A DNA stretch of 64,000 nucleotides from Mantamonas sphyraenae STR306. Lineage: Eukaryota; Protista; CRuMs. Made by a program: the position numbers and the translations under genes. This document shows positions 14,915-45,814 of the stretch, piece after piece. The stretch covers positions 100,708 through 164,707 of the forward strand of contig JAPMXV010000041.1 of NCBI GenBank assembly GCA_026936335.1, read 5' to 3'. Position 1 is the stretch's first letter, and each line of letters starts with the position of its first letter. Below the pieces are notes generated by a model, which had not been told where the DNA came from, ran no database searches, and saw nothing but the letters and a program-made list of their open reading frames with translations.

Positions 14915-15063
14915 CTTGACCATGTCCAAAAGTCGGCTTACTTCGGGACAAATGGCTCCCAGGGCATCGTTGCTGTCTGCCCTGGGCACACCGAGCGGTG
15001 GCTTGCGCTCGGTGATCTTCGCAGCTCCAGTCGTCGATGGAACTGCCCTCACATCCTGTTCAC
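14915..15063 (-). ncRNA. Putative omegaRNA scaffold of Fanzor 1
   Basis: Four consecutive stems: 15021-15029/15038-15046, 14989-14997/15006-15014, 14958-14966/14978-14986 and 14920-14955. Mismatches resolve as G-U pairs only on the minus strand. Confidence 0.68.
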
Positions 15064-18000
15064 TCACCCTTCCGTACCGGTGGTGACTTGATCATTGGAC
15101 GTGGCTGTGGCTGCTGCTTCCTTCTGTCTGCTGAATGGCATGGGTCGTTGTCCCGATTTGATTTGTTCAACAATGATCCAGAAGAATGCTTCGCAGGAGT
15201 GCTGGTCTCGCTGCATCGCCACGTGCAATGGAATGTCCTCGTCGTTGTGGATTTCCCGTTGCAGCAGCGCAAACAACGTCTGCTTTCTGGTGTGGTGATT
15301 GCGCGACTGGTAGCCGCATGTTTTGCAGAACTGGAGCCTGCCCAGGGGTTTGCGCGACACATTGGTGTTGAAGCTGAGTGTCGTTCCACACCTGTGCACA
15401 CTGGATGTGCCATACTCGTCCAGGTCCTTGACCACGTTGTAGTACACGGCCAGCTTGTCCAACACGTCGCCCGTCCGTCCGCCGAGGCTTGATTGTTTCT
15501 TTCCTCCCACCACCAGCACGTGCTGTTTTGGCATCCCTCTGTTGGCCATGAGTTTCTGTGTCTCTTCGATTGACCGTTGCAGGAACTGCGCCTGGATACG
15601 CGTGCCATGCCTCCGTCGTCGCATCTCGTTGTGCGTCATCGTCGGGATCGTCATCTGGAACACCTTGTTGTTGTGTGTCCACATGAGAACCCATGTGTCC
15701 CGTGTGACGCCCCAATCCACCAAGGCGAACAAGGTGTCGTTGACAATGGACACCCACTTCTCCTCCTTCACGGTGTCTCCGTCGTTGCCACCGGGGTCAT
15801 CGACAGCACCAGCATCCACCTCGCTCTCCTGTGCCTCGCCCTCGTAGTTGCCGCCTGTATCGTCGTCTCTGCCCTGTGCACTGTCCGTCCCTGGTGCCGC
15901 ACCCACTTCACCTTGTTGTGTCTCCCTCGACGCCGACCCGATCGTATGAAACTTGCTGACCCCCCGGGACCCAACGTTCCGTCCAAGGTCCCGCAGGCGC
16001 CCATACTCCGACTTGTTCACGAAGGGAGCCATCCATACGGGCAGGGTGTTGGAATACTGCAGGATGTTGGTCGCTGCTGTGAACAGTGGTCCGGAAACCT
16101 TGTTGAGTCGGTTTTTCCCAGTGTCCTTGTCGCTGCTCTTGTTGTTCTTCGCTCGCGTTTGCATCTCTGCCTTGATACGCCAGAGATGGGTCAAACACTC
16201 ATGCTCAATCTTGGCCACCAGTGCGCTGTGCGTCTCGGTGTCGTTGTGGGCGAGCGGGTCTTGGACCAAGGTTTTAGGATAGAACACGATCGCGGCTGTC
16301 CCGGCCGACGATACGTGCGTCGTACCTTTCCAGTGGTGCAGCTGAGTAGGACGCATTCGCATCACGGCTGTCGTGTTGGCCGCAACGCTCGCAAACATGT
16401 CGTCGAACAGCGAGGTCGCGTCCTCGCCCAACGACGCCCACCACCTCGACACTGCACAGCGCACCTTTTCGGGGAACTTGCCTTTGTGCGTCTTCCACAG
16501 CTCCAGCACTCTCTTCCAGGTTGCTGTGCTGATCGAAAGCGCCTTGCCGTTCTCTCCCAGCGTCACAGCTGCCTTCACTGCCTGCCATTGTGTGTCGTTC
16601 TCCAGCAGGAATGGGATCAGCATCGTCTTGGCGTCCTCCGGAGCGAGCATCATCCCCACATCCGCCTCCTCCAGTGTAAGCTGCGGCAGCAGGTTGTGCA
16701 GGATGCAAAGCGGCGCGTTTGCCAACGCTTTCGCCTTGTGCCCCTTGCTCTCGGTCGCAAGCATCGTGCCGTTCGGATCGATGGCCTTCAGCAGCTCCCT
16801 CGCCTTCAACAACAGCATGCGGTAGCTCCTGGATCGTCTGATCTCACCCGCCTTGGTCACTGCCTGTGTTTGCGCGTTTGTCCGTTTCTGCGCCGCTTCA
16901 GCTGCGTGGGCATCGTAGGCAAACCCCAGGGCAGCCTTGCACACACCATGGCGTGTGAATGCCTTGTGAACGCCCCCGTTTGGGTGTTCTTCACTTGATG
17001 CGTCGACAGCTGCAAGCAGGGCAGCCTCGCGGATACCCTGCGCTCCCGGTTCTTGTGCTTCAGCGTAATTAACCAGCAGAGTCACGTACAAAAGCGCCCT
17101 CTTGCTGGTCACCACTTGCTTGAGCCTCGACGTCACCATGTTGGCCAGGAGCCAGCGCATGCGAGTGGCCGCAGCACCCAGGTGGCTGATGTCTGGGGCA
17201 GTGCAGTCCACGCTGCATGTGTTGCCGCCGTCCTTGCTCACAATGCGTCCTGTCATCCTGTCCACGTACAGTTGTCCCTTCACCTTTGTCAGGACATCCC
17301 ACACGAGGCCATCTTTTGACGCACTGGTCATGTACTTGACGGCAGTTTCAATTTGGGTTTGGTTGCATCCCTGAAGGACACCGACAACCGCATTGACAGC
17401 CGTCAGCACACATGGGACAATGTCGTTGTATGTGTCCGCCAGGCGCTGAAGAAGCTGGTCTTCGCTTTCGAGAGCGTGGAACCCGAGGTCACCGAGTTGG
17501 GCGACATTGTGAATTGCCCCAAGGCCAATGGGAATGGTGGTGTCTTTCACGCCTGCGTCGGTCATAGCAGTTTGGATGAACTCGGTCACGTCCTGGATCA
17601 ACAGGTCCTGGTCATCTGGTGGAGGCGCGCTTCTTGAGGTGCGTTTGCGAGGGCGTCGCTGCAGTTGCGTCGTGTCGTGCTCAACGCTCTCCTTTGGCAT
17701 GTCATCCAGCGAGCCTATGGCATGGGCAATGCGTTCTTCGCCTTCGTGTGCTCCTGTGTGAAACGCCGCCGCGGTTTGAGTTTCGTCGTACAGCGAATTC
17801 TCTGCCAAGCTGTTCAGGTCTGCCTCGGTGAACTCGATTACCTTTTCGAAGGTATTGATGTCGTGCAGGAGCACACGTGCAGAGCAGTGCCCATTCAACG
17901 CATCGGCTTGTGCCCTGAGGACCCGCTGGAGTGTGACCACCTGTGAGTGCGCCACGCCCATCTCTACGCCGCTGGAATCCACATGACCCTTTGCTGCAAG

Positions 18001-20834
18001 GTTCTCAGCCATATAGTCCACCAGGTAGTCCCAGACGTGGTGTCTGAACGCCTCCATGTCCATCGCGGCTGCAGTCCCTTTGCCTGGGTTCTGAACGTGT
18101 TCGGCGCGGAGTGTGGCCAGATTATGAAAGACACTCACGGCCTTGTCGTCCTCGTCATGCATGATGGATGCCAATGCCATCTCTGGCTCCTCCAGCTTGA
18201 GGTAGAGCTCCATCTTTCCAGACAGCGTGGCTGTGGCGCTGTGAAGCGGACGGTGTGGGAGGATGAACCTGGCACCGCCGTCGACAAACAGAGCCGTCCG
18301 CACGGCCGCGCACATGCACGCCCGCCCGCTTGTGCTCTTGATGGCCTTGCCACCCGATACAATTTCGATGTTGATCTCTGCCCCGTTCAGTTCGCCACAT
18401 AGAAGCAGCAACGTCCCGAGCCACTGCTTTGCCCGTGGAGACGTCGAGTGCAGCCTGAAAACGGTGTTGTCCGTGCTGTTTCTGAGCAGCTGTACGATGG
18501 TGGCTTCGTCGGCTGGGGTGTGTTTCTTCAAGGCCTTGGCGAGCCTGAAGTAGGGCCTCATCTGCCCCGCCTTCTTGCCGTTGTAACTCCACATCCTGCT
18601 CGACGAGATGAGCAAACGGCGCTGCATGCTCGCTGTCACGCCTGGGGCACCTTCGATGATGGCGTCATGAGTTGCGATCCCCAAACACACGCAAGCCTGT
18701 GTTGTTTTGTCCGGCCCACCGACCTTTCCGAACGCGTACGAGCCCAAATCCACCACGTCGATGTACTCCCGCTTGTCCGCTTCCTTGTCATTCTTCTCTT
18801 TGTTGGCCTTTTCTTCTTTCGCCTTCTTCTCCTTGGCCGTCACCAGCTGTTCAAGCGCCTTTTGCGACGTGGTGGGTTTGCCCGGCAGGGCACCGCGTAA
18901 CGCCGCAAATCCTTGTTCATCCTTTTCCTTGGCACCCTTCTTGAGCATGTTGTCGCCAAACGTGTAGCAGACAACGTGCACCTGGTGTGCAGCACCGTTG
19001 TTTCCACGCACATACATCATCTTTGCGTTGGCGAGCGAGTACTCCAGCTGGCCAACCAAGTACTCTTCGCTCGCCTGCAGGCAGGCCTGTTTCTCCTTTT
19101 CGCGCTGGTTCTGTTGCTGCTCTCGCCTCTTTTCTGCAGCACGCCTTTTCTTGTTCCGCTTGCCACGGCCACCGCCACTTGCTTTGCGCCGCTTGTTGGA
19201 GTTGCTCCCCGTTTCTCTGGTGGGAACGGCGGGCATGGGCAACCTGGTGATTGACGACTCGTGTGGACGCACCGGCGCAGCAGCAGCAGCGTATGAGCAT
19301 GGCTCCGTGGTCCCGACTGTCGCGTGGACGACACCAGGCAAATTGGGTGTCCACTCGACCGAGCTAATGGCGTCGTCGTTGAACTCGAGCCACGTTCCTG
19401 TGTGGATACGCACCATTGCAATGTAATGACCGGCGTTGGCATCTTCGGATGGGTGGTACAGCATCACAGTGTGCACTTGCGCCGCAACTTTCACAGCCAG
19501 GTTGCTGGCAACAACTGCGCCGTTTTCGTATCTTCCGTGGTTGTACGTGTACACAGCAGTGGGCGTGGAGCGCAACTCAGTCGTACTCTTGCCCTGGATC
19601 GCGGGCTTACTCTTGCCTTGGATCGGGGTCTGTGGGCACTCGCTGCAGTTCCATTCAAACGTCCCGCCTTGGGTAATTGGATGAACCGGATGATCAAGGA
19701 AGAATGCCTCTGTTTTGCGCGACGAGAGCTCGTGCTTGCACTCCGGGCAAACGGCATCCGACCTCACAACGACGACGCCACAAGGCAGCGCCCCGAGGTC
19801 GTCCAGGGGGGTGTCTTCGCGTACCGCTTCGAGTACCCCATCCACGAATTGTGTGTGCCCTTGGATGAACTCTCCGAGTGTTAAGAGTCTGGGAAGGGAC
19901 AGTGTGTGTTGGCTATGGTCAGCGACGGAACGGCGTTGTTGGAACGACGATCGCCAAAACTTACGCCTCTGTGGACGCCTGTTGCTTGCGCATCTTTTCT
20001 CCGCGCTCGGTGGAGAACCACGCATGGAGCAGAATTGCGGCCTTGGAGGCCGCGTCCTCGTCGTTGCGTCCGTTCCCCATCATGTGTGACCACAGACACA
20101 AGAGAGAGCGGAGTTGCCAAGTGCGCTGAATTGTCTGAGTGCTCCAGTCGCAGATGCCTCTGCCGAGTGCAATTAGGAGGACACGTACGGCCACAGTCAT
20201 GTAGCACAGTACCGCGCGCACGTTGCTGTGTTGGTGGTAGGGGAGGGGAGGGTGTGTGTTGGTGATTTGGGGAGGGGAAAAGAGTGCACCTTGCACGCTG
20301 CACGCCAGAGGATGACACCACGGGAAATGCTTACCGGATACCGCGACGTGCATTCAACATGTGTTCCACCACGGGGTTGGCCCCAGCAGAGTACTCTCCC
20401 TCGTCGTCAGCACCCAACGTCTCGAAGAGAAACCCGACAACACTCTGGTCGATTTGGGGCGCAAACTCCTCACACAGACCGTTCACGGCGGAATGGATGG
20501 TCTGCGGTGCATCTTGTTCCTGTGCAGGCGTGCCCCCAGTGTCTACTACAACAGGTGTCAGCGCTTGGCGCGCAGCCGAAAAACGAAAACACAGGCAGGA
20601 TAACGCACAGCTGCGCTCCAAAAACGCAAAACACGCTGATGGGGTGCTAGATTGCCAATCAAACTCATCACTGGTCGGCTCCTGATGGTGATGGTGACTC
20701 CCGACATCGGGAGGTGTCGGTGCGAAAGTCGATTCGTTCTCCGCGGCGCCAGCTGCCGCCAGCATCCGTTCTGCCACCCTTCTTGACCGGCGAGGCCCAG
20801 TTGGGGCAGTGTTGCCCGGCGTCTCGTCACTCAT
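15064..20834 (-). CDS. Spliced USP(C19)-like peptidase - Fanzor fusion, ~1861 aa; exons 20834-20335, 20225-19965, 19888-15064
   Basis: GTAAG..CAG introns join in frame. Cys box GIRNVRAVLCYMT, QQASTEA, two CxxC, His box GHYIAMVR..WLEFNDD. RuvC-I ALVDWG, DEYGTS-x3-RC, CKTC, RuvC-III QRDQHS. Confidence 0.85.
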
Positions 20835-21530
20835 GGTGTTGCGTGCCGGGTGGATACGTTGTCGACGCCCGCGCCAAAATCCGAATCCTGAATCCAACCC
20901 ATTCTCATATCCACCTTCATGCTGCATTTCCGACACGTACATACACTACAGGACACGGAGATTAGATACCGGAGTTGTATGACATAGCTGGTGGTGTCAG
21001 ATGCACCCGCCTGGGGAGCCGCCAATTCGATGTGCGCTTGCGCTCGTCCAGTCGATTCATGGGTCGTGAATCCATACCACGCGCACGCCAAACATACGCG
21101 GAGTATCTACATACCCGCTCTGGTCATCGGTAATCATCCAGCCAGTGTGGAACGAGATTGGCCAAGGCTGCACGCCGTGCCAATTTCAGCGCACTGGTCC
21201 GGCGCCCTCAACCCTTGTCAGCGACCTGTGCTTCAGTCAGTGAATGCACGCTCACGGCCCGTAGCAGCAGATCAGATCAGCTGCCGTGTTTACCCGGATG
21301 CAGTTGTTTTGGTTTCCCGGACGTCGCACGGGAAGACAACAGCAGCAAGCGAGGCGGATGATGTGCAAACCCCGTGATAGTGTGGATCTTTATCGGTGTG
21401 CACGAGGCCCCTACGGTGCCGTGTCTCACTCAAACAGACGTCATCGACGGGAACACAAGCCGTAAATGCTGTGCAATTTCATCGCAGGTGTGCCAAGCCG
21501 TCCCGTCGTTCTTTTGCCACCTGGAGAGTT

Positions 21531-22462
21531 CCATGTCGGTTGTGGGATGCCCGGGATGGTGTACAAGGAGCGTGGGACACCGTGCCGGTGGTTGCGTTGG
21601 AGATCGGCAGCGAATGACCCCGGCGCTGGACAACCTTCCCATTGCGTCCCTTTCGTAATTCAAAGTGTGCTCCATGTCGGTTGTGGGATGCCCAGGATAG
21701 TATACAGGGAGTGTGGGACGCCGGGTTGATGCTGGCGTTGGAGATCGGTGTGGTGAATGATTCGTGTGCAGAACAGCCCTGCCATTCCGTTCGAACCGAG
21801 GTTGGTAGAGTGTTCCATGTCGGTTGTGGGATGCCCGGGATGGTATACAGGGAGTGTGGGACACCGGGTTGATGCTGGCGTTGGAGATCGGTGTGGTGAA
21901 TGATTCGTGTGCAGAACAGCCCTGCCATTCCGTTCGATCCGAGGTTGGTAGAGTGTTCCATGTCGGTTGTGGGATGCCCAGGATAGTATACAGGGAGTGT
22001 GGGACGCCGGGTTGATGCTGGCGTTGGAGATCGGTGTGGTGAATGATTCGTGTGCAGAACAGCCCTGCCATTCCGTTCGAACCGAGGTTGGTAGAGTGTT
22101 CCATGTCGGTTGTGGGATGCCCGGGATGGTATACAGGGAGTGTGGGACACCGGGTTGATGCTGGCGTTGGAGATCGGTGTGGTGAATGATTCGTGTGCAG
22201 AACAGCCCTGCCATTCCGTTCGATCCGAGGTTGGTAGAGTGTTCCATGTCGGTTGTGGGATGCCCAGGATAGTATACAGGGAGTGTGGGACGCCGGGTTG
22301 ATGCTGGCGTTGGAGATCGGTGTGGTGAATGATTCGTGTGCAGAACAGCCCTGCCATTCCGTTCGATCCGAGGTTGGTAGAGTGTTCCATGTCGGTTGTG
22401 GGATGCCCGGGATGGTATACAGGGAGTGTGGGACACCGGGTTGATGCTGGCGTTGGAGATCG
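21531..22462. repeat. 143-bp tandem array (~6.5 units) with alternating A/B variants
   Basis: Units start at 21531 (diverged, 141 bp), 21672, 21815, 21958, 22101, 22244 and 22387 (truncated). Confidence 0.95.
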
Positions 22463-22599
22463 TGCAGGGTTTTCACATATTGTGCTTGGTTCACTCCCCA
22501 CATGAGCCGCTTTCCAAACGCAGAGCATGGTGGTCTATGGCAGCCTTGTGCAGATGTCCACGCGATGATGATGCCGCCATGGCCTTTCTTGGAGAGGTG

Positions 22600-23177
22600 T
22601 CGACGCCCGGTTTTACGACGACCTCCACACTCGCAGGTCGACTCCAGTCTCGTCGGCCCACACTATATTCTTTGCGCGCATTCGTGCATCTGTGCGCTGC
22701 AGCCGTTCAAACTCGCGCCGCCGCATACGCACGTGCGGCTTCTCTTTCAGCTGAGAGATTCTTCAACTTTTTCAGTCGCAACTGATGCCGTTGGCAGAAT
22801 ATACACAGTGTAGCCAGGGAAACTCGAAGATGGAATTGTCTCGTCAAAGCCAGCCGCATCTCATCAAGATACGAGGCACTGTGCTTCGCTATACGGCGGA
22901 CAAGGGATCGTTTGTGGTGCGCCTGCAATTTTCTGGCCGCCCACCGGCACGAAGTGGAGTTGCCACACCTCCTGTGACACGAAACTGGGCAACGTACTTG
23001 TGCACAGCACCTACGCTGACCTTCCAGTGCAAGGCTACCTGCTTCATTGATTGCGGGGTTTGCGTTCAGGTAGCCGTTTACTATGTTGAGACGCATCGCT
23101 TCCGGGATGGCTGAACCAGACTTGTACACCCCACCGTGTGTGTTGATCTTGAACGTTGGGTTCATTGCACTGGGCAT
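22600..23177 (-). pseudogene. Degenerate, truncated IS630/Tc1-like transposase
   Basis: Across at least 3 frameshifts: INTHGGVYKSG, HTH SMKQVALHWKVSVGAVHKYV..GGRP, YLDEM..VSLATL, first catalytic motif NIVWADETG. Second D and E not found. Homologous to the transposase at 44740-45760. Confidence 0.8.
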
Positions 23178-23608
23178 GTTGGTTTGGTGACAATTGCTGA
23201 TCCGTCAGGTTGGCGTCTGGTGCGCCTTGTCCATCACACCTGCTTGACATCCCTTCTCGTCCACACAATGCATTATTCGCAAGGATTCATTGTTTCCATT
23301 GTATAGATGACTTTGGTAAGCTTCTTTCAGTGCACGTGGAAACCGAGGGGGAGTGGGAACGATTGGCCGATAGAGCACAGCCATGAGCACACGCCAAACC
23401 GGGGTGTGAACATCTCTGTGATCACAAAGAACCCACAGAGGAGTGATATCATGCCTCGGTGAACATTCTATGTGTTTCTGGGCGTTGTTCTCGGTGGTGG
23501 AGCCATGTTCACGCTCAATTGCAACCAACTGAGCGCGAGTGTCGTGGCAAACAAAAAAATCGCAATCGAAGGGGCACCATTGAGCAGATCGACTTGTGGG
23601 CAGCGGTG

Positions 23609-25228: not shown

Positions 25229-25233
25229 AGTGT

Positions 25234-28078: not shown

Positions 28079-28093
28079 TTGTACCACCACGTG

Positions 28094-29833: not shown

Positions 29834-32800
29834 ATGTCATCGTCGTCGTCGTCGTCGTCGAGAAGCAATGACACGTACACTGCCATGTTTGTGCCGATGA
29901 TGGACAAACTGTGTGGCAAGGGTACCGCCGACGAGTATGATCAGGGCGACGGCGCAGGCGAGGCCTTTGACGCCTTTTACAACGTTGCCAAACGCTTTGC
30001 CAAGGGCAATCTCGACGGAGGTAAGTCAACACAGGGCATCACAGGGCCACCCTACGCACATCCACATGCCCATCTACACCGGGTTCTATCCACCACCCTC
30101 GCGAGGACCCCTTGCTTTTTCTCACCGCGTCATTCCGTCCTATCCCTGGCCCCCCCACACAGGTGTAGCGGCCATGGCCAAGTGCACCGTGGCTGTTCTC
30201 AAGGTGCTTAGTGCACACGCATCTCCAGACCTGCTACGACGCAGCAACAGCAGCGAATACGTCGTCAAGTGCGTTGTTGGGTCGAGTTTTTTTTGCGTGA
30301 CTTTGGTTCTGAGTGTGCCAAACTCCACTTTCCTCCTCACACCCGTCCACCTCTCCCCCCCATCCCACCTACCCCTCATCTCTGCACATAGGAACATGAT
30401 GGAGTACCTGCGCAAGGTGCTCACCATCCTTACCACCAAGGAAAAGTTCACCCGGCTGCTCCTCGAAGCAGATGGGGCACCCCTGCAGGAGTTTTTGTCC
30501 ACCCTCACCCAGAATCTGGTGGAGATCTCCACCCGTGCTGCCTCCTCCGAGGCCACACGCATCGAATGCATGCAGAGCATCCGATCCATATGCAGTATGT
30601 GTGCTTTCCTCGTGTGTGCACACGTCCCACCCCAGACACCCACCTCCTCACCCCTCTCTTCCCCCCCCCCCCCCCAGCGCTGGGTCTCTCTTTGACACAG
30701 AACCATCAGGACAAGTATCCATCGTTCCCATACACCATCCCAGTGGGACCCTTCCTGCCAGCAGCTGTGGAGCCGAGCATGTCGCAGTGGCTGCGTGAAG
30801 AGACGCTGAAAACGCTGCAGGAGCTGGCCGCCATCTCGCCAGCAATGCACCATACGGTGGTTGCGTCACTGGCCACCTATGGAGCCGATTATTACGCCTT
30901 TGACGTGTTCTGGTCATTGGATGGTGCGTCGAACGAGGAGGCGGTGCAGATACTGCTGGACCGCACGCGCAAGGGCCTGCAAACGGAAAACGCCAGTGTG
31001 CCGCGTGAGGTGGCACAGAGCATGCACCAGGCCATCCGAAAGGGCGTGTTGGTGGTGAACCAACACGTGCAGCTGCTCACGGACGTGTTGCACGTGTGTG
31101 CGCAGATCCAGAGCGAGTACAAGACAGACAATCGGGACTACGAATACTCGCAGGAGGCGTTGGAACTGCTGGACGACTGCATTGCACAGGAGCCCAACGA
31201 GGCAGCGTTCCTGCGCATGGCCACCAACCCGTTGACGTTGGAATCGTTGGATGTGATTGTGGGCCAGAGCAGCGGGTACACGGAGGCCACCTGGAAGCAG
31301 GTGTTGTTGCCCTTTATCAACCAGCGTCTGGACATGATGCAACTCAGTGGCGTCAGTGGCGAACAGATGGAACAGCAGGTGATTGACCTGTTGCGAGAGG
31401 CCGCACGCATCTTTTACATCAACCAGGACCAAACCCCCAGCGTGGAGATGGGCGAGGCGTTGTACCTGGCGGTCTTGGAAGCCATGCGACACGGCTACGC
31501 AGAGACGGAACGCTTCTCCGAGCTGGCGGCCAAGATGATCACGTATCACATTGCGGAGAATGCTGCCACGTGGTTGCGGCATGCCGTCAACCCACGCGTG
31601 TGCCATCGACACATGGTCACACGTGCGGTGGGTGAGATTGTCTTTGCCCTCCTGGGTATGGAGAGCACAGCCACGTACAACGAAGTGCAACAGGTCAGCG
31701 AGGCACAGCAACACGCCGTCCTGCAGGTGGTGGCCACCATTGGCAACGTGCCAGGCTTTGCCCTCTTTGAAGAGATTGCCGTCATGTACGGTCCCTACCT
31801 GGCCAACCACGAGGACATTGTGGCTCTCAGCATCCAAACCATGGACGGGCTCGTCAACCATCTGCTGCAACAAACCCAGTGGACGGTGGAACAGGCCGCG
31901 TCTGTCAAGTGGATGAACGATCTCGTGCGCGCCCTAGCCATCCGCCTGACGCCTGCCAACGCCCCTGCCCTCTTTGAACTGGCCCTCAAGACCATGAGCA
32001 TGCTTCCGTTGGGACACAGCACCGCGTACGGCGACGAAACCCTGACTGTGATTATTCGCAAGGTGCCCCACGGCGTGCCTCTGTCCATGGGGGCCGTCCA
32101 CACCGCCCTGCGCACCTGTGGCGAAGAGACACGGTATGCACTGACCGAGTTTGTGCCCCACCTCTGCCTGCAAGACCCCTCGCCTGCGGTGCGTGCCCAA
32201 GCCATGCGTGTGTTGATCACCCGTCCCGAACTGTTGCCCTCGTACGCCGATCACATTGTCAAGGCTTGCACGCCGGGCGAACGCACCGAAACCAACGGCG
32301 ATCTGTACCTGCACGAAAACGAAATGGCCCTTGCCAGCGCCCCGCTGCTGGGCCTGCTGGCCGTGATCCATCCGCCGGCCATTGGCACGTGTGTGCACAT
32401 GCTGCTGGAGGCGGCGCGCATCTCGGCCCTGAACGATCCGGAGAACAAGCCGGCCAAGGAGGTGACGGATGGTCTTGCGCGTGTGGCTCGCGAAGCAAAC
32501 TCGGCCAGTCTGATCGAGTGGTTGGGACAGAAGAAGGGCGGTGGGATGGGACTGCTGCCCACGCTGGTGGAGATGTCCGAGGCCTGGGCCGTGTTTGCCA
32601 ACACGTTGCAGGAACAGGAGGTGCTCACACACTCCATGCTCACGGGCTACAGCCTGGTGGGCGGTGCCAAACAGGCGCGCAAGTACCAAGCCGACCAGAC
32701 CAAGGAGCTTCTGGAACGCATGCAGAGCTACTTTGAGCAGGACAACCTGTTGGATTCCTTGCGATGTTGTCATCATCTGCGCACCCGCGACCAGGAGGTG

Positions 32801-33290
32801 TTTCTGGCACAGGCGTACGGTTTCCTCACGGAGCAACTCATGCCGGAGATTGCACGCAGGCTGCTGCCCACACCCATGAAGGACAGCCTGGGTGCATTGG
32901 TGTTCCACGACGACGACCTGGACAACTACGACCAGACGATGCGTGTGTTGAAGGAGCTGCAATCGCTGTTTCCAACAGAGGCGGAACAGGTGCTGCAGGT
33001 GGGCCAGCGCATCAGCGATCTCAACCAGGGCATGGTCCTCCAACGCTACCTCAGCATTGGCAACATCACAGGCGCACGCAAGTTTCTACGTGAGGCCGAA
33101 CACGACCCTCGCCTGGCCATGCTCGTCGACAACGCCACCGAACTCAAGCCCAGGGTGGCCAAAATGGAGAATGCCAACCAGAGGGAGGAGTATGCCCCAC
33201 GCACAAGCTCGTCAGACACCTCTGCATCGGCCTCGGGTGTCGGCATGCCTTCCTCAACCACCCCACTCCTCACTGTGCCCGATTATGGTG

Positions 33291-33324
<34 letters not shown>

Positions 33325-33733
33325 GAGCAACAACACGGACGCATTTGACGACGGCTTTGACCCCTGGGCTGCCATCCAGAACCTGAATGTGGAGCAGATG
33401 TCTCCCAAGGATTCGCAGCCGCGCCTGGTGAACCAAGCCCAAGGCCTCGACGATGGCGAGCAGCAGACGACGAGCTCCAAGCTGCAGACCAAGAGGGCCA
33501 AGGCATCCAACAGCAACGATGGCAATCTTGTGGAGATGACCTCGTTCAACAGCGAGGACACAGAAGATGCCCTCGAGGAGGACGACATTGTGCTGTGGGG
33601 CGTCCTCGCAGACGAAGACGGCAGCGGCAGCGCAGCGAGCTCCCGCAACCCGTTCAGCAGCAAGCGAGCGCCCAAGAAGAAGGGCAAGAAGGGAAAGAAG
33701 TATTCCTCCAGCGACAAGCTGCTGGCTGCGTAG
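29834..33733 (+). CDS. Large alpha-helical (ARM/HEAT-like) protein of unknown function, several 5' introns
   Basis: ~1000 aa main exon with host-like codon usage; short upstream exons with GT..AG introns; no family recognised. Confidence 0.65.
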
Positions 33734-34419: not shown

Positions 34420-34452
<33 letters not shown>

Positions 34453-37053
34453 GCTGCTACTGCTGCTGCGTGCAGAAGCGTCAGCGTCGTTGAACAGGGC
34501 AAACTTGAGGATCTCAGCAGCCACAGTGGCATCCTCCTTTTCCACCTTGCCCGAGAGACGCAGGCGTGCGTGTGCAGTGGCCAGACGGATGAGACACTCG
34601 AGGGTACGCACGGTGATGGGCAGCGTCTTTGTGGTTTCAATGTTGCGCAGGTTGGCGTACTCCTCGGCCAGGACCTCGCTGGTCTCCTGCTGCAGCTCGG
34701 GCTTGATGCGTGCCTTTGCATACGCAATGTACTTCTTCATAAAGTCCACCTTGAGGACGGTGTTCTTGGGGCGTCCGGGCATGCTGTTGTCATACATGGC
34801 CTCCTCGTGGTTGTCGTCCTCCTCATCATCCCCTTCGGCCTGTGCCTCTTCGCCCGTGTCCTCCAGTCGGTTCTCCATGCGTGTGTGTGCACTTGCGTCC
34901 TTGTTCTTGTCCTTGAACAGGTGCATCTTCAACACGTGTGCGCTGATCTCTCTGTCCAGCGTGGCGTCGATGTTGTCCAACACAATGAAGAGCAGATCGA
35001 AACGTGAGAGCAACGAGTCGGGCAGTCCAATGTTCTCGTGAGGAGTGCGCTCCCTGTTGTACTGGCCATACACAGGGTTTGCCGCAGCCACCACACTGCA
35101 TCGTGCATGCAACTCGGCATGGATTCCGGCCTTGGCAATCGTCACTGTTTGCTGTTCCATCACCTCGTGGATGGCCACTCGGTCGTTGTCACCCATCTTG
35201 TCAAACTCATCCACACACACCACGCCACGATCCGCCAGCACAAACGCACCTGCCTCCAGGCGCCGTTCACCCGTCTCTGGATCGGTGGTCACGGCTGCAG
35301 TGAGACCCACCCCTGAGGAGCCTCGACCTGTGGTGTTGATGGCCAACGGGGCCAGATGGAGCACAAAGCGAAGCAGCTGCGACTTGGCCGTGGACGGATC
35401 ACCCACCATGAGCATGTTGAGATCACCACGCAGATGGGTGCCATTGGGCAGTGTCTTTTCCTCACCACCCAGCAGCAACAGCAACACCGCCTTTTTCATG
35501 TACTCGTGGCCGTAGATGCTCGGCGCCACACTCTGACACATAAAATCCAGCAGTTCGCCCTGGTTGCCTGCCTTGGCCTGAGCCAGACCCAGGATGCGTG
35601 ACACGTCGTCACTCTCCAACACAGCTGCACTCTGTTCCTTGCTCTTTTTGATCACCTGGTTGGCAATCAGCAGCGTGCGAAACACGCCACTGCTGCTTCC
35701 CTTGGCATACGTGGGTCCAATCGCACGGTAGATACCCACCAACCGCACTCGGTCCCCTGGCTTCACAGAGTCCACCAGGTCGTCCGTCAGCACAGCCTGG
35801 CAGCTGCGCGGCAGCTGGCCCGCAGGTGCATGTTCGGGCATCTCCTGCAACTGGATGTACTGGTTGTCCGTGTACTCGCAATGTCCATACTCCGTCGTCA
35901 ATGGCTGGTCGTTCTCGTCCTGTGTGTCACACACATAGTCGTCGGCCAATCGTCAGTGGGTGTCCGTGCCGGGGGGGTCCGTGTCAGAGAGCGTCGTTTG
36001 TCAAAAAGCACGGCCAATTTGTGTGCACCCCCCCCCGTCGGCTTGTAACCACCCGTCTCCAGGGCCACGATGCCACTGCCAACACTGGACAATGCACCCA
36101 TGGCATACAAACTCACCTTGGTCGGGTATGTAGAAAGCGTCGGAGCGCCGACGAGCGACGTGGCGTCACGGTAGGTGCGTGAAAGGAACGAGTTGCCCGT
36201 CTCCGAGTAGTGCACCGACTTGGCAATGCGCGGCCGCACAAGCGACACTATGTGACATGCACACACACACACACACACACACACGTGACCCAACGTTCTG
36301 TGTCAGTCGCTCGTCCTATGTGGCCCCCTTTTCCCTCCCCTGCATGCCTGCCTACGCCGTACGTGCGCCGACCTGTCAAAAGCGGAGAGGGCTTGATCAC
36401 ACCTCCGCACTTTTGGCAGGCGCCCCCCTCCCGCCCTGCCATCATCCATCCTCACCACGTACCTTTGGTCACAATGCCCTCCAATGCAACCATCTTGGAC
36501 ACAAAGTGGCTGTCGAGCTGCCGCGGCGTAACCAGGTGCGAGACAAAGGAGCCTTCGAAGCCGACGTGAAACTCGCGCACCGTCTTGGCATAATCCGGAT
36601 AGTTTGCCTTCATAAAGTCTGACAGGCCCTCTTCAAACGCACGAATGTACTCCACAGGTTTGTTCAGCACTCCCTGTGCCAGGTCTGTGTTGAAGTCCCG
36701 CAGGTCGTTCAGGTTCACCGTCAGACGGTTCTCGTTCTCCTCCATCATGGCGTCGATTTTCAACGCGTACGGCGAATTGCCCTGTCCCCGCACATGGACG
36801 CATGTACACCACACATGTCAGTCATCACCGGTTGGTCCATGGGCATATGTGGCACCACGTGGCATGCCCTGGCTGTGGATGGCCTCCAGTGCGGCACAAA
36901 GCGGGGTCCAAGACAAGCGACACGCGCGTGGTGATCATGCGCCAACCAAGCAGCGTAGAAAACCCCCCCAAAACTCACCTCTTGGTCAAGAAACTCGGCA
37001 AAGGCACTCTTGATGGACTCGTCCACCTCGTACAGGTCAGTGGCGGATGTCAT
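33886..37053 (-). CDS. MCM3: DNA replication licensing factor MCM3, multi-exon
   Basis: QEMPEHAPAGQLPRS, GDPSTAKSQLLR, TTGRGSSGVGLTAAVTTDPETGERRLEAGA, VDEFDKM, SRFD. Confidence 0.95.
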
Positions 37054-37099
37054 TGTCTGCAACAAGGTGTGTGGGCTGGGTGCGATGGCGCGTATTGTA

Positions 37100-37199
37100 T
37101 TGGCCACATGGCTGTGCACATGGCCTTTGGCTAGTCGATGCACCACATGGTGCGACAAGGTAGTATGGGTAAGCCTGTGGATTTGGATCTGTAGGCCGA
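37100..37199 (-). ncRNA. Putative omegaRNA scaffold of Fanzor 2
   Basis: Stems 37102-37110/37117-37125 (two G-U pairs on the minus strand only), 37134-37156 and ~37172-37197, between the Fanzor stop codon and the terminal TA. Confidence 0.55.
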
Positions 37200-40100
37200 T
37201 CATTTGCCTCCTTCGTCGCTTGGTACCCTTTGTCGCTTGGGAGCATGCTGTTGTGGTTGTGACCCACCCGAATCCTCTTCTTCCCCCACTTCCTCATCTC
37301 TTCTCTTCTTGCTTCTCTCGCCTGCCTTGTCTGCTGCCTTGCGTTGCACCTTGATTTTCTTTGTTGGCTTCTCCATCCAGACGCCTGTGACAAAGAAGAG
37401 CATCTGCCGCCAGAAGATGCAGTGTGCAGAGCCTCGGTCTCTCTGAACTGCCTGGTGCAAGTTGTGCTCACCCTCGCCCTCCATCTCTTTGCATGCGTGC
37501 CGTTGTGCAAAGCGTTTGAGCTGCTTGGTGGCGTCAAACATGTTGGAGTCGATGTCCGACAGGCAGTGGCTGCTGCACGTCCGCCATCGCCCAAACTTCT
37601 CAGCGCCAAAGTCGTCCAAGTTGTCGACAGCGCTGCCACAGAAGCACTGCTGCGATGTATACCTCTCGTCTGCTGCAATGACGACAAAGTGGTTGGCCAG
37701 CATCTCCCGCATCTCCTGCGATTTCCCGCGTCCGCCAAACGTCTTTGTCGGCTGCAGCACAATCACCTGCTCCAGGCCCAGATGCGCGCGGAACTTGTGG
37801 ATCACGGAGATCATCTCACGCACGCCTGCCATCCTTCGTTTGCGAAACGTTGCGTACTGCGCACGCATGTGCTTCGCATCCTTGTGCAAATCTTTTCCGA
37901 AGACACGTTGCTTGTACTCCTCCTTGAAGTCCGTGTACGACGCCAGCACTCGGTCCTGCCCTGCCTTGTGTGCCTGCACATCGTGGCTGTCCAGGGGCAA
38001 GGTGGCCACATACAGCTGGCCGTCCCGCACAAAGATCGCCTCGACCCAGTCGCGTCCACGACCAGGGTCAATGCTGATCCACAGCACCTTGCGTGCATGC
38101 TCAAGGACTGCGTATCCATTCTTGGCAAAGGCCTTGACCTGCTCGACCAAGCCACGCTTCGGAACGGGGTACTTCGGGAAACCGGGAGCAATCTTCTGGA
38201 TCTCGGTCGTCCACGTGTCTGGCATGCCCGTGGGCTTCAGCACGGCCAGGGCAATCAGCGCGTTCTTCTTGGGGTCCAGCAGAAGGGGCAGGAGATGAGC
38301 CATCCTTGGCCTGATCAATGTTGCGAGGCTCGCCGGTGAAGGCAGGAGAGTGTGAACTCTTGGTGGCTGTAACACAAACGCTCGTCTGTACTTGCCCTGA
38401 GCGGCGATTCCACCAGAGAGCATGCGCATGCTGCTGGCGCTGACGTTCTTCAGCAGGCACCTTGCGTTTTTCGTGCCAACGCCGCGCGTGAGCATGAGTA
38501 TTGACTTCACGGGAACTGTTCGCAGCGGCCGTTTCCCTGCCCAGTGCTTGTTGGGCAGATCCTCGTCACTGTTGTTTTCTGGCATGCGACGAGCATACCG
38601 ACACCGATACACTGCCTGCTTGAGCCATTTAGGGAGACTCGGGATGGCCTCATCCGTCAAAACCCACTCGCGTTCTTTCAGTGCATTCCACCAACCCGGA
38701 TTGGCGTCCGACTTGGCGTTCGGGTTTGCGTCTGGGGGGTCGTTTGGGTTGGCGTCCGGGTTGGCGTCCGGGTTGGCGTCCGGGTTGGCGTCCGGGTTGG
38801 CGTCCGGGTTGGCGTCTTGGGGGTCATCTGGGTTGGCATTCCCGTTCGGCTTTCCATGGGCTTTCCACCTTGCTTCCATGGTGTTCACAAAGATCTTAAA
38901 CGCGTACGTCTTGACGGAGTACGCGCCGAAGACGAACTGGCCGCCAATGTCAACCGGACCGGGAAACATCGCGTCAACACAGTCCAATGATGCTGCTGTC
39001 GATGCAATGGCGCGCTTTGCTTGTGTGCTTTTGAGATTGGTCTTCAGGTCGGGCTTGAGCATCACATCCAACAGCACAGACAACGCGTCCCGTTTGCCAC
39101 GCACGTGCTTGCCGAGTTGATCCGAGAGACTTGCGCACACCTCCTCGTACGGGTCCCATGGAGGTACACCTTGTGAGCGCTGCGCATCCACAGAGAGCTG
39201 CGCATCCACGGAGGACTCCTGCACATCCATGGATGACTCCACATCCACAGAGGGCAGCACATCCACGGAGGACTCCTGCACATCCATGGATGACTCCACA
39301 TCCACAGAGGGCAGCACATCCACGGAGGACTCCTGCACATCCATGGATGACTCCACATCCACAGAGGGCAGCACATCCACGGAGGACTCCTGCACATCCA
39401 TGGATGACTCCACATCCACAGAGGGCAGCACATCCACGGAGGACTCCTGCACATCCATGGATGACTCCACATCCACAGAGGGCAGCACATCCACGGAGGA
39501 CTCCTGCACATCCATGGAGGGCCCCTGGACCTCCACTGAAGAGTGAGCAGCAGCCGCGGCAGCAGCCTTTGTGGCCTTGTGGATGGGCTGAGAGAACACA
39601 AAGTCACGTGTGTCCTTTGTCGACACCTGGTGGGTTTGGAACGCCTTCTTGGTCTTTGCATAGCTTGTACGCATGAGCGCGGCGACGCTGGCCACGATGG
39701 CGGACATGGGCAGCTCGCTGGGCGCCCCGTTCCTCATCAGCGCCACGATCATCGGGTAGGCACACAAGGAGATGGCCGACTGCAGGCTGCCATTGAAGGC
39801 ACGAGCGATGTCATTGGCCATGCTCGACACGGGCGCCTCCGAAAGATCCACCTTCAGACGCGTGACCATGAAGGAAAAGTCGAAACCATGTTGACCATCG
39901 CCCGCCTTCTGTATCCCGTTCCTGGTAAATCGTACAGACTTGAGCTCCTCTGGGGTGTCCACGTTCTCCTTGAGTACCTTGAGGTTGTGCGTCGCCACTG
40001 TGCGCAGGGCCGTGAACGCTTCGAGCAGGTAGAAGGGCTTCACGCGGCTGTGATCTTCCACCATCCCGTCGACCACCATCCCGTCAATCATCGTCTGATC

Positions 40101-43100
40101 CTCTGTTGGCAGCTCCGCCTCGTCCAGCTCCGACTCATCCAGCTCCACCTCATCCAGCTCCGCCTCCCCCTGCTCGTCGCTGCCATCCACCGATTGCTGA
40201 CGTCCATGGGGCGCAGTGAACCATGCAGTTGGGTCCTTTTTCACCTCTGGAATCACCTGGTCGACGAACCATGCTCGAAGCAAGGCTGTTTGCACGAGCA
40301 TACAGTCCGCCAATGCTCCAAGCACGTCAGCCTCGCTCTTTCCAAGCCCACGCACGTTCGCCTCCAGCTTCAGATTCTTCTTGAGATCGCTTTGGTACTC
40401 AACAAAGTCGTGCTCCCTGATCGCCGTGGCCGAAGGCAGCAGCGTGGCGAAATCAAAACCGTGCGGAATCCACACGGGTCGCCCACGCCGGCTTCCCTTC
40501 ACGTCATCCTTGTCATAAAAAGCATCCTTGAGCGGCGTCAATGTCTCGCCCTCTGTTGTTGCCCCTGTCTGGAGCGCCACCTCGAATAGGTCCGCACGGG
40601 TCGCTGATGATGGGGTCGCAGGAGGGCGAAGCACTTGGCCATCCTTCCGCAGGAGCACTGCCAGTTGTTTCTCGTGCCGTGCTGTGATCACATGTGGAAC
40701 AGATGTCCACCTTTTAACGGCCTCACGGGAACCGAGTGACTCCTCCTTGTTCTTTTTGAAGACAGATGCATCAAAGCCAGCAGGAATCTCCTCCACAAGC
40801 TGCTCGATTTCGGCTTCAGTTGCCGTCAGCAGGTAGGGCACCGCACAGTCCTCCTCGTCCGGCTCCGTGGCGTCCTCCTGGCCCACCATGGCCTTCGCAA
40901 CATCCTTGTGAATGCCCTGTGCGAGATGGAATGGCATCTCCTGCACGTGCAGCGTCCCTTCCCGTGCACTGTGGCCACGCCCGAGCTTGTACTCCATATG
41001 CATACGGGTGTCATCGGTGTTCTTCAGCTCTGGCTTGTGGTTGTAGGTGATGTTGACCTCAGTCAAGCCCAATGCTTGTGCCAACTCCTCCACTGAGCGC
41101 GGTTTCGGCTTGGCCTGCGTACACAGTCTGCTGAACGACTCCATCACGGTCTGCGCGCGTTGATGATCGAGACCATGCACTCCTCCAAGCCGCTGGCAGA
41201 CTGCTTGCGCCAAGGCGACGGCCGACATCGGACCATGGTCACGTTCGGTCTCCTCCAGACCCACCGTGAGCAGCTGCTGCCTCAGCGCTTCAGTCTCTTC
41301 TTCCTTCTTTTCGTCGTCACTCTTGATCGATGATTTCCCTCGCGATTTGGTCTTTGTCGTCTTCCCCTTTTTGGGCTTCTTCTTGACTCCCTTGGCCCAG
41401 GTTATCAGTTTCCATGAGGTCGCTTTGGCGTGCACTTTCTTCGTGTCCACCACATGGGCGTTGAAGATGTTGACAACCCGCAGCCCCGGAGCTGACCCAT
41501 GGAGTGCGAGGCCAGCCATGAGACGCCCCTCGCGGTGGCACAGAACGACATCGTCCTCGGCCTTGACCTGGTTTTTGGCGGCCTGCTTTCTGACGGCCTT
41601 ATTCTGACGGCCTGGTTTGTGACGAACTCGTCCAGTGACATCGTTGCCACTTGATGGGCAGCAAGGTAGTCGCGCATCACTGGCGCCAGGGTGGTGACAG
41701 TGGCACGAGCGGCGAACGCTCGCTGCTTGGCGTTGGAGAAGGTGTCCTGGGACGCAGCTGCACTCAGTTGCTGGTAGAAGCGTTGCAGCTCGGCTGGCGT
41801 GGCTCGACCTGCAAACAGTGCGGCTGTGGACACGACGTCGTCCACAACCACAACCGTGCGAGTCGAGAACAGCTTGCTCAATCTGGGCAACACAGTGTCG
41901 AGGATCGTGGTGACCCATTGCCAGGCAGAGGTGAACGTGGCGGGATGCGTGATGGTATGGTCGGAGAGGTGCAAGTAGCGAGCGGCGAGGCTGCTGAGGC
42001 CAACGTACACTGCGGCAAGGCGGGTTCCCCCCGACCCAGCGACGCCACGCTGCACACCACCCTCCACGCCCTCGTTGACAGCAGAGTCAGCCAAAGGTGG
42101 GGGTTGCCAGTTGTCGTTCAACACGTCCAGACACTTGGCGGTCACTGGCGTCTTGTCGCCGCTTGAAGTCGGAAGCTGTGTCAGCTGCCCTGCTGCCGAT
42201 GTCTGCGTGGCGGGCACACGGTTGAAACGGAGCCCACGCACAGATGCGGTTGACCCGGCAACCTGCACCCGAGTCGAAGGTGGCCGTCCCAGAGGCGCTG
42301 GTGTTGTCCCACGAGCCCGTGCAGCGTGCGCGTACAAACGCCTTCCAGCAGCTGAGGTGGAGCTCTCCTTGCTCTGCATCACAACTCGCGGGCCCCTGAT
42401 GGCCATGGGCTTGCGGAACACGTTTGATTTGTTGTCGAGAGCCACGGTGCCCATGGCAGACGGCAACCGCCACTCCTTTTCCGGTTGAGACTTGAGGAAG
42501 ACCAGTTTGAAACCCGTGGGCGCAAGCTCAGGCGCTGGCCACTCCTCGTCAGTCAGCTGCTGCGCAAGGTCATTGTACACACGGAATTTCCCTTCCGCCA
42601 GTGGAAGCCATGCCGTGTAGTGGGCCCCTTTGAAACAGAGCACCCCGAAGGGCACTTGCTGCTCTTGCTCCGGCAGGCCCTCGCCCACACGCTGCTGGAG
42701 TGCTCCTCGCTCCGCAAGCTTTGCAACCCCTGCGGCGTCCGCTGGCGGGGGGGTACCACCATGCAACATCTGGATGGGGAATCCAGAGTCGAATGCGACC
42801 TCGAGGCGGTGATGGAAATCTGCCGAGTCACCCCACAGGTCGTCGCCCCCCGCGAGCGCTGTAGCGGCAAGGAAGAGATCGTTGCAGGCCACGGCATACA
42901 TGTCGTCGTCACAGAACATGGCCATGCACCAGGTCTGCCGCAGAAGGGCCGTGTTGACGACGCTGGGGTCTGTGTGTGCCGGCGCAAAGAAGAGGGGCGG
43001 GTGAGCAATCGGGTCAGCGGGATTGAGTGCGGTTTGAGCTTACCTTGCTCCCCAGGCTCAGGCCCCAACTGGGTCGGGTCGTTCCCGCCTGTCGTTACCT

Positions 43101-43419
43101 CCAGCCATGCGAGAAGGTACTTGCACATGGACGTTCGCAGAGGTGGAGAGGCGCGCACAGCAGTTGAATAGGACGACACCCAGCATGCCACCTTCGCGGT
43201 GTTGACACCGTTGACGTTGGCGTACCCTTGCATGTCACCTTCGGGCTCGCCCAGATTTGCAGGTAGTCTTGTTCGTGGTGTGTACAGGGAAATCGACTCG
43301 TTGTCGGCCACACAGGTCGGACACACCAGCGACACGTGAGATCGGGCTGACGTTACCCAGCACACCATGAGCACTGTCTCGTTGTTGCAGCTATGGTGCT
43401 GACACTTCAGAATCGACAT
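37200..43419 (-). CDS. Spliced USP-like peptidase - Fanzor fusion, ~2043 aa when a 14-bp insertion at ~41600 is removed; exons 43419-43044, 42969-37200
   Basis: Cys box GYANVNGVNTAKVACWVSS, spliced GEQDPS, His box GAHYTAWL..FRVYND. RuvC-I WISIDPG, ADERYTSQQCFC, CSSHC, RuvC-III QRDRGSAHCI. As assembled, the frame is broken at 41588-41613. Confidence 0.82.
38697..38840 (-). repeat. 12-bp coding repeat (NPDA)n in Fanzor 2
   Basis: gggttggcgtcc tandem units. Confidence 0.9.
39203..39520 (-). repeat. 57-bp coding tandem repeat (SMDVQESSVDVLPSVDVES) x ~5.5 in Fanzor 2
   Basis: Five identical 19-aa units plus a partial unit. Confidence 0.95.
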
Positions 43420-44739
43420 TCTACACTCTTGAAACTATTGACTCCACCCGCGCACTTGGGCCAGCCGCCGCTTTTCAGAGCAGGTCAGTTGTCAAACGTC
43501 AAGCCTCGCGCCTCGCTGTCAAATGCCGCAGAAAGCTTGTTGCCCTCTCCGACGACGCCCCCGAGCACTTGCACACAGTTCACAAGCCCCATCCTACACA
43601 GTCCTACGCACATCACTTGCTGCTCTGGAAGGGCCCCGCGCACGCCGTGCCGACGAGAACATCGAAACGCACGTTGGCCGTTTGCCGGCACAGAGAGGTT
43701 GAGATCCTGCAGTTCACAGTCGCTGAGGAGCACAGTGGCCCATGTAACGATGTTGAGGAACAGATGGAACAGAAGCTGGACCTGGACGACCAGGAGGGCG
43801 AGGAAGGTGGGGTGCTGCTTTCGCAGGCGTTGCACGTCACAATAGAGTCTCGGCTGTTTTGTACCTGGCAAACTCAATCCAGCAGGAGATAGATCACCGA
43901 GGAGGGGTTGAAAGGTAGGAGGCATGGCCACAACGCCAAGAAAAATTGATGAGTGGCTAGAAGTTGCCGCGTCGTCGCGCTGCGTCGTCGCCTCTACATG
44001 CAAATGTGGGTGTGATGTGCTGTCCCCGTTTTCAGTATGCTCCCTGTACGACGCCCGATTGCCCACCAAACCGGCAGACGCAGCGCTGGGCACCGCACGG
44101 GCAAAAGAGTGATGCTTCGTTGCCGTCGCGTGACCAGCAAGTGGCACACGTCCACAGGAACCAAACAGAGTCAAGTGGAAAGGCTGTGCGACTACACCAA
44201 GACACTACAGCAGGAAGCGCCCCTTGCCGTGGGGCCTTGGCCGTCCTCTACGACACAAAGAACCGCCTTGTCAGGCTACGTGAAAATCAGGTTGTGAATC
44301 CACGGTATCGGGCTTCACACGCTGTCTCATGGTGTTTGTAGATACATATTGGGACATGGGTCTGCTGAGGGGAGACGCATGTGCACAATAATTGTACTGG
44401 GTGTCAAGGGGTGCATCTCAACGGCGTCAACCTGCATGCTGCTCCTCCCACGGGTGTTGGAGCCAAAACCAGAGGACCATGTGGCATGATGACTGTATGC
44501 AGGCGTTCCATGGATTGTTTATGCACGGGGCGCATGGTACTGTTCGCAAAGCCCGGTTGCAACGGGGTCGCTCCTGACTGAGGAGACTGCTGCCAGGGGA
44601 GGTGGGCACTATCCACGCCTTGTAGGTGCCCCACTTAGCCCTCCCTGCTTCTCTTTGAGCCCCCCCGACACAAAGATGGCAATGGGAGTACGGGTTTTTC
44701 AGCACCAGCGTGCGCCCTGAATGGCTACGCTCCACGATC

Positions 44740-45760
44740 CTACATGCGGTACCCGCAGTGATGGACCCAGTTCCTCACATCAGCAGCCGTAACATGCCCC
44801 AATGCAGTACAGATCGCCGCGAAAGTGCAAATGTCCACTCGATGAAATTCCCTGCGGAGGACCGCCTTGAACTTGCTAAACATGAGCTCGATGGGGTTGA
44901 GCGTAGGTGTGCAAGGCGGGAGAAACTCGACATCCACCCCATACCAGGTGCACAGCTGGCGTACAGCATCGCCTTTGTGGATGGAGCAGTTGTCCATGAC
45001 CCAGAACTGTTTGGCGGCAATCTCGCATGCGGGGCAAGAGGTCTTGCTCCAGGAACTCCATAAACAGCTGCCGGTTGTATGACCCCTCTCGCATTGTGTA
45101 CGCTACCAGTGGCGAGCGCCCACCGGTGCTGATGGCCGCCAGCACGCTGATGCGCTTTTGCTTGGGATGGTTCTCCACAACGACCGCTGGTTGCCCACGT
45201 TTCGCACGACCATATCTCCTGTAGCACACTCTGTTGTTCACTGCAGTTTCGTCCAAGAAGACCACGTTCGGCGCTCGGAACACACCGCGAATCCTCATTG
45301 CTCGAGTAAACTCGCGTGTGCGCGCCACGGTGGATTCCCTGAACCGTTGCTTGGCGATAGCACTCACCTTCTTGCGAGTCAGTCCCATGCGCGCACAAGA
45401 ACGGCGAATTGTGGACAGAGATACCACCTTGTTGCGATGAAGAGCAACGGCTACTTGCAACTCGTCCAGGTACAGTCGCGGATCATCGGCCACCTGTTCA
45501 GCAATGAATTGGTCGTCATTGGCATCCAGGAGACGCCTGAACGGTGGTTGGGCCACAAGAGGGCGTACATGGCCCATGGCTCGGTGTTGACGTACAATCT
45601 TGGACACGACGGAAGGAGACACACCGAGAGCCTCCGCTGTGCCTCTGCACGAAGGACGCAAGCTGGATTGGTAGTGAAAGAGAATGCATTCTCGTTTGTC
45701 CGCCGAAAAGGCTTTGCCGTGGATGTATGACCCACCCGTTGCATTCGTTTTGACGGTCAT
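44740..45760 (-). CDS. IS630/Tc1-mariner DD34E transposase, frameshifted near 45000
   Basis: [45 protein letters not shown], then in another frame [21 protein letters not shown] (34 residues between D and E). Confidence 0.92.
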
Positions 45761-45814
45761 TTTTGTTTTGCGTTGCTGACCACAGCGCGCGGAACGCCAC
45801 AATACAAAGGAGCG

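Follow-up and report, generated by a model that had tools for sequence, protein, structure and literature searches.

Two IS630/Tc1-type elements of Mantamonas sphyraenae with giant Fanzor1-like nucleases predicted to carry a USP-fold protease domain

Fanzors are compact nucleases with few added domains. Transposons of the IS630/Mariner type that carry Fanzor1, among them PGv-1 and PUl-1, have been described (Bao and Jurka 2013, PMC3627910), as have IS630-linked TnpB and Fanzor genes in giant viruses (PMC10691335), and a conserved layout of transposase, Fanzor and omegaRNA is thus not new. Most Fanzor1 proteins comprise 600–700 amino acids (aa) (PMC11423790), and Fanzors together with their 3' RNA cut the empty allele, after which repair restores the element (PMC13565253, PMC10432273). 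The solved Fanzor1 structures (SpuFz1, GtFz1 and PpFz1) are without a catalytic protease fusion, the added domain of PpFz1 being a 100-aa FRI insertion that binds cyclophilin. Proteases of ubiquitin or SUMO are nevertheless borne by several DNA transposons, including Ginger1 (OTU/Ulp1), Mutator (Ulp1), Helitron (OTU) and a Trichomonas transposase with a peptidase C19 domain, where they are joined to the transposase or Helitron protein and proposed to act on repair (PMC2836005). Here we describe two elements, A and B, in a 64,000-nucleotide stretch (the window) of contig JAPMXV010000041.1 of M. sphyraenae STR306, in which an IS630/Tc1 transposase gene is followed by a giant gene, modelled at 1861 aa in A and ~2048 aa in B, that is predicted to join an N-terminal ubiquitin-specific protease (USP, peptidase C19)-like domain to an RNA-guided nuclease rather than to a transposase. 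The evidence consists of these two loci, and of sequence only.

Like the Mariner/IS630 Fanzor1 transposons, the elements have a DDE transposase upstream of a Fanzor that shows the rearranged RuvC, a zinc finger and the RD motif; the 3' end is structured in A, and TA is the probable target. They differ from them in protein size, in the USP-fold domain, in altered zinc ligands and in the lack of the TDG motif and of detectable terminal repeats. We think it somewhat probable that A and B represent an anciently diverged IS630/Tc1 (Mariner-type) lineage whose homing Fanzor1-like nuclease carries its own ubiquitin-editing helper.

The claim that both giant proteins end in a Fanzor-type RuvC domain was upheld by a Fanzor1 profile, by profile–profile alignment and by a tree. 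Standard libraries barely detect this domain (Pfam TNB matches in B with an E of 0.004), and profiles were therefore built from natural sequences: viral-contig loci were fetched by motif, and the resulting Fanzor1 set was confirmed on the solved Fanzor1 structures (E below 1e-63). Against the 331 open reading frames (ORFs) of the window the Fanzor1 profile placed A and B as the top two (E 3e-5 and 6e-3), the next match having an E of 2.8. Since the controls had been selected on the DExxTS motif, the region downstream of that motif was also scored alone, where A reached 20.8 bits and the best of the shuffles 5.5. Aligned as a pair to 23 Fanzor1 sequences, A and B gave a Prob of 86 and an E of 5e-6 over 210 columns, running from RuvC-I to RuvC-III. 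Both proteins keep the D-E-D triad intact, and the alternative (rearranged) Glu, a defining Fanzor feature (PMC10530073, PMC13565253), stands just before the zinc finger. The RuvC-I motif reads DWG in A and, in B, DPG, which has been used to define Fanzor (PMC10711439). Within the zinc finger the RD is invariant and the second ligand pair is kept, while the first pair is shortened to CxC in B or HxC in A; A and B share this shortening, an insert before RD and a terminal FW. A tree from a curated 117-column alignment makes them sisters (92/92, with long branches) and puts them on the side of Fanzor1 (99/99), a placement that keeps its 99/99 when A or B is placed singly. A sister position for the pair is not rejected (p-AU 0.44). 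The RuvC topology is that of SpuFz1, GtFz1 and PpFz1. Single-sequence AlphaFold modelling reached a pLDDT of 36, with only weak RNase H-like matches in fold searches; an alignment-assisted model (pLDDT 61) had its best Foldseek matches to SpuFz1 (E 2e-4), a result biased by its Fanzor1 rows, partly circular and counted as a compatibility check only.

At the other end of the giant protein, the start of exon 3 of A matches Pfam UCH (E 0.001), and all of its 35 PDB matches are USPs. Aligned with hhalign to a profile of 54 viral USPs, A gave a Prob of 88 and an E of 3e-6 over 167 columns that include the zinc fingers and the His box. The His box of B (His 42620-42622) came second among the window ORFs, with an hhalign E of 0.001. 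The His boxes scored 25.4 bits in A and 7.5 bits in B, each exceeded by 0 of 1000 shuffles. Read from the sequence, both proteins have Asn-Asp at +16/+17 from this His and, six residues ahead of the candidate Cys, an Asn. The fingers zinc ribbon (boxes 3-4) is present in A, and none was seen between Cys and His in B. In USPs the zinc-finger subdomain binds ubiquitin. The predicted USP domain is accordingly well supported as a fold in A and likely in B, where the match is weaker and covers the His box only; the Cys boxes lack profile support. A resembles known USP/C19 deubiquitinases (Ubp8, USP14, USP25/28 and giant-virus USPs) in its His box, zinc-ribbon fingers and box order, whereas the Cys box is divergent in both proteins and B is apparently without fingers between Cys and His. 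Among 2936 Cys windows the candidate comes 8th in A and 79th, a weak placing, in B; both lie in exons preceding that of the His box. Because these boxes are non-canonical, protease action on ubiquitin remains a putative activity.

It is conceivable, though unlikely, that the domain is no working deubiquitinase: it could be a relic or a scaffold, or else a protease of papain fold that cleaves the polyprotein and frees the Fanzor part. The non-canonical Cys boxes would fit such a view, as would the shortness of the B domain (~150 aa from Cys to His, against ~230 in A) and the unrelated stretch of 800-1000 aa that lies between the protease and the nuclease. Yet Cys, His and Asn/Asp are kept in A and B despite RuvC identity of ~24%, the zinc-finger subdomain is retained in A, and no cleavage motif common to A and B was seen that would point to self-processing.

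That the two domains belong to one protein was predicted for both elements; it held for A, and in B the two parts are separated by a 1-nt frameshift. Gene models were predicted from DNA only, and in the searches each exon, and each piece of a frameshifted gene, served as a separate query. Canonical introns separate the exons: in A, with three exons, they measure 109 and 76 nt, run from GTAAG to CAG and match in phase; in B, with two exons, there is one of 74 nt. A host-trained codon model favours the modelled frame in every segment, with a host-like signal along all exons. USP boxes 2-6 and the RuvC of A lie on one stop-free exon, which makes the fusion independent of splicing: one frame of 1607 codons holds the His box, at residue 154 of exon 3, together with the RuvC triad (residues 1391, 1491 and 1561), and the chance of its containing no stop is ~1e-26. 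The fusion in B requires reading across the break between the USP-like part and RuvC, where one base is missing near 41610, within a 15-nt tandem repeat. Its transposase also has a 1-nt frameshift, an extra base near 45010, and B is either recently broken or carries two assembly indels. A tiny intron that would rescue the frameshift in the giant gene was rejected, there being no consensus donor and the modelled introns measuring 74-109 nt. B's USP and RuvC being out of frame as assembled could suggest that a USP gene and a Fanzor gene merely lie side by side and were fused by the gene model or the assembly; the single missing base in a repeat and, in A, the long open frame with its uniform codon signal make this explanation highly improbable.

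Between the giant proteins of A and B, similarity is significant only in RuvC (24% over 154 aa, E 5e-5; z 10.3 against shuffles). The original prediction held that they align in patches; its RuvC part is significant, while the W/H patches (LWKTHKGK..WWASL against RWKAHGK..WWNAL; HHWKG against KHWAG), although co-linear in a MAFFT alignment, give a z of 0.6 alone. The middle regions of 800-1000 aa show no detectable homology by shuffle-tested alignment. Such dissimilarity of N-terminal and middle regions, the differing intron positions and the repeated uptake of ubiquitin and SUMO proteases by transposons (PMC2836005) are what would be expected had A and B gained USP-like domains separately, with the shared layout convergent. 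We regard this as very unlikely, given that the RuvCs are sisters, that the shortened first zinc pair, the insert before RD and the terminal FW are derived traits in common, and that both proteins share the unusual Asn spacing before Cys.

Two further features of the giant genes were observed. The giant ORF of B contains in-frame tandem repeats at 38696-38837, 39185-39518, 40110-40166 and 41567-41624 (units of 12, 57, 15 and 15 nt), which A is without. Words resembling Walker A and B occur at 41615-42085 (-) in B, where the Lys of Walker A is replaced, and A has one resembling Walker A at ~18600-18750 (-); a P-loop reading of the B middle was rejected for want of Pfam or PDB support.

Assignment of the upstream genes to the IS630/Tc1 family was confirmed, B by Pfam DDE_3 and NCBIfam IS630 (the pieces either side of its frameshift were searched apart) and A as a homologous remnant. 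The homology that had been proposed between the two was also recovered, at 26% identity over 141 aa (E 8e-6). B has a DDE transposase with DD34E spacing and an N-terminal helix-turn-helix, and A a remnant only; the best database relatives of the B protein are 27-36% identical, and the two named ones are fungal. The transposase N-termini (23100-23177 and 45460-45760, both -) resemble a Pax paired box, with a Pfam PAX E of 0.0014 for B. A 143-bp tandem array in A appears to be amplified transposase sequence. On two examined contigs that carry transposase homologs there was no giant gene.

The arrangement of the elements also agrees with what had been claimed from the sequence: two insertions ~14 kb apart with common order and strand, and every quoted motif in its place on the minus strand, those of the transposases (INTHGGVYKSG and its counterpart) at 23147 in A and 45748 in B, those of the patches at 16500, 16443 and 16338 in A and at 38870, 38693 and 38549 in B. 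As predicted, there is no DNA similarity between A and B, either when the ends are aligned locally or when ends and spacers are searched with blastn in the window. Both elements are flanked by eukaryotic housekeeping genes in gene-dense eukaryotic DNA of ~58% GC. Downstream of the stop codon of A, 150 nt fold into four hairpins with a z-score (Table 1) reached by 0 of 200 shuffles and among the strongest of 90 background windows. The candidate RNA, at ~135-150 nt, is inside the 75-150 nt range reported for SpuFz1, GtFz1 and PpFz1. The proposed omegaRNA thereby gains support in A, while the stretch in B folds without significance; Rfam gave no match, and no homologues were found that could show covariation. 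The hairpins of A stop just before the TA at 14913-14914, where the right end is placed, shortly past the AATAAA of VPS35 at 14886. In B, the left end is limited to 54 nt holding one TA, which supports 45802. With no terminal inverted repeats found, the ends rest on TA positions and neighbouring host genes: TA sits at the host-constrained ends.

Table 1. Features of elements A and B, in positions of the window
Feature	Position	Strand	Basis or remark
Element A	~23.2-14.9 kb	minus	Between VPS35 and nucleoside transporter gene
A transposase, degenerate IS630/Tc1	22470..23177	-	Homology to B; paired-like N-terminus, first catalytic Asp
A 143-bp tandem array	21524..22462	not assigned	6.6 copies, 92% matches; in transposase catalytic half
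A exon 1, predicted, low complexity	20335..20834	-	Canonical GTAAG donor and codon signal
A exon 2, candidate catalytic Cys	19965..20225	-	Codon 20204-20206; divergent Cys box
A exon 3, USP boxes 2-6, nuclear localisation signal, middle, Fanzor1-like RuvC	15064..19888	-	One stop-free 1607-codon frame
A USP/C19 fingers (two CxxC) and His box	19340..19888	-	His codon 19426-19428; Asn-Asp at +16/+17
A RuvC and zinc finger, Fanzor1-like	15100..15771	-	Asp 15715-15717, alternative Glu 15415-15417, Asp 15205-15207
A candidate omegaRNA scaffold, four hairpins	14915..15050	-	z -4.65
Element B	45.8-37.1 kb	minus	Between MCM3 and NAD synthetase
B probable left end	45802, within 45761..45804	-	Sole TA between transposase ATG and NAD synthetase ATG (45815)
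B transposase, IS630/Tc1, DD34E spacing	44740..45760	-	Pfam DDE_3; NCBIfam IS630 E 1.8e-18 and 5e-11
B exon 1, predicted, Cys-rich N-terminus	43044..43419	-	Candidate catalytic Cys (43183-43185)
B exon 2, USP-like His box, frameshift, long middle, Fanzor1-like RuvC	37200..42969	-	
B RuvC and zinc finger, Fanzor1-like	37323..38150	-	DPG Asp 38067-38069, alternative Glu 37665-37667, Asp 37437-37439
B 3' non-coding stretch, three small hairpins, possible omegaRNA	37095..37199	-	z -1.6 to -1.9, not significant

A number of results weigh against a homing Fanzor1-like lineage with a fused protease. On the nuclease side, an automatic alignment puts A and B outside core Fanzor1; the TDG hallmark of the WED domain, present in 22 of the 23 controls, is absent in both; a profile of the N-lobe gives no match to a WED/REC lobe in either; and an Asn that hardly varies among the controls, three residues past the last catalytic Asp, is replaced. 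With the TDG missing and the N-lobe unrecognisable, we name the proteins Fanzor1-like and not canonical Fanzor1. On the protease side, the Cys boxes of A and B match no USP profile and lack conserved USP residues, a test weakened in A by an intron that splits the box, the exons having been searched apart. The USP regions of A and B show no significant similarity to each other (His box z 1.5; Cys exons z -0.4), and this comparison does not support the origin of the two domains from one capture. As for the elements themselves, no significant terminal inverted repeat was detected in A or B, and neither a second copy nor an empty allele of either was found in the data searched.

The transposase of A is a pseudogene with at least four frameshifts or stops in its first 570 nt, against none in the 5586 nt of the giant ORF (binomial p ~7e-5 under uniform decay). 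This dead transposase beside an intact giant ORF suggests selection on the fusion, either selfish, with the element mobilised in trans, or for the host; A is now non-autonomous, with the fusion kept intact. Of the proposal that this is an old, selected system, selection is what the decay contrast suggests, and a single shared USP capture is what the comparison of the two domains does not support. Outright domestication, in which the fusion is a host RNA-guided deubiquitinase of chromatin or DNA repair and the transposases are leftovers, could account for the 1861-codon ORF, introns and structured RNA of A outlasting the transposase, for host-like codon usage and for the terminal repeats that were not found. 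We nevertheless hold it to be quite unlikely, as the nuclease triad is intact, B pairs a nearly intact transposase with a broken giant gene, and selfish OMEGA elements are known to lose the transposase and keep the nuclease (PMC13565253).

For the homing lineage that we favour, the following course may be envisaged. The OMEGA nuclease would be a Fanzor1-like protein enlarged about three-fold by the N-terminal USP (C19)-fold protease and the long middle, to which no domain is assigned. By analogy with the family, the 3' end of A or B would be transcribed as an omegaRNA guided by the flanking host DNA, the protein would cut the transposon-free allele, and repair would copy the element back (restorative homing). 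The tethered protease might then strip ubiquitin, or a ubiquitin-like tag, at the cut site or from the protein itself, and such removal would favour homologous copying during repair, counter silencing or stabilise the nuclease. For the OTU, Ulp1 and C19 domains carried by transposases, roles of this kind have been put forward before (PMC2836005). Most economically, the fused protease would aid homing by acting on ubiquitin, be it at the break, on chromatin or on the nuclease itself. A bolder and more doubtful version is a natural RNA-guided deubiquitinase, in which an active USP, directed by the omegaRNA to a selected place in the DNA, would edit ubiquitin on chromatin or repair factors, A possibly serving the host already.

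A fusion of USP and Fanzor had been presented as undescribed, and this stands in the literature searched and among 122 viral Fanzor1 ORFs, none of which contains a USP and the longest of which has 851 aa. No Fanzor or TnpB with a deubiquitinase or ubiquitin-specific protease was described in the full texts searched, which included few subscription papers and not Repbase, and term look-ups in the main Fanzor papers gave no protease fusion. An IS630/Tc1 transposase lies near 39 of the 119 fetched viral Fanzor1 loci, and hence the layout is ordinary and the fusion is the new part. Homologs of the giant proteins were not found in 5.8 billion proteins or 1.84 billion representatives, nor by exact look-ups or plasmid and phage tblastn, and metagenome and viral contig scans gave random matches only; ten window ORFs had no entry in a 15-billion-protein collection. 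Given length and word limits and the thin eukaryote coverage of these searches, such blanks leave room for relatives. Neither a RuvC nor a USP was called by NCBIfam, PHROGs, PADLOC or a Pfam search of the whole ORFs, and a scan of prokaryotic genomes met mostly short contigs of metagenome-assembled genomes and was uninformative.

Among the viral contigs, one 1715-aa ORF (L272:4806-9950, -) has a C-terminal USP domain and no Fanzor match within it. In two viral loci (L143 and L173) a USP gene stands apart from, but only a few kb from, genes for a transposase and a Fanzor1; these neighbours are probably ordinary giant-virus genes, yet offer a possible route to a USP-Fanzor fusion. Element B separates the start codons of the divergently oriented genes for MCM3 and NAD synthetase (37053-37200 and 45761-45815), with at most ~160 nt of host intergenic DNA left around it, and the two genes may now need element B sequence for transcription. 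A host-like codon signal on the opposite strand at 43600-43890 (+), in the B spacer between transposase and giant gene, is possibly a small extra gene. Between A and B, a host ORF of 1055 aa (30566-33733, +) is without a Pfam match.

If the protein is indeed an RNA-guided deubiquitinase, it would join a eukaryotic OMEGA effector to an enzyme that modifies proteins. A lineage three-fold larger and equipped with a second enzyme would mean that eukaryotic transposons have built RNA-guided multi-enzyme effectors, and, with no detectable relatives in billions of database sequences, it would be one that current Fanzor surveys miss. It would also make testable the old idea that transposon-borne ubiquitin and SUMO proteases steer DNA repair or silencing, since the site of action of a protease tethered to a programmable target would be known.

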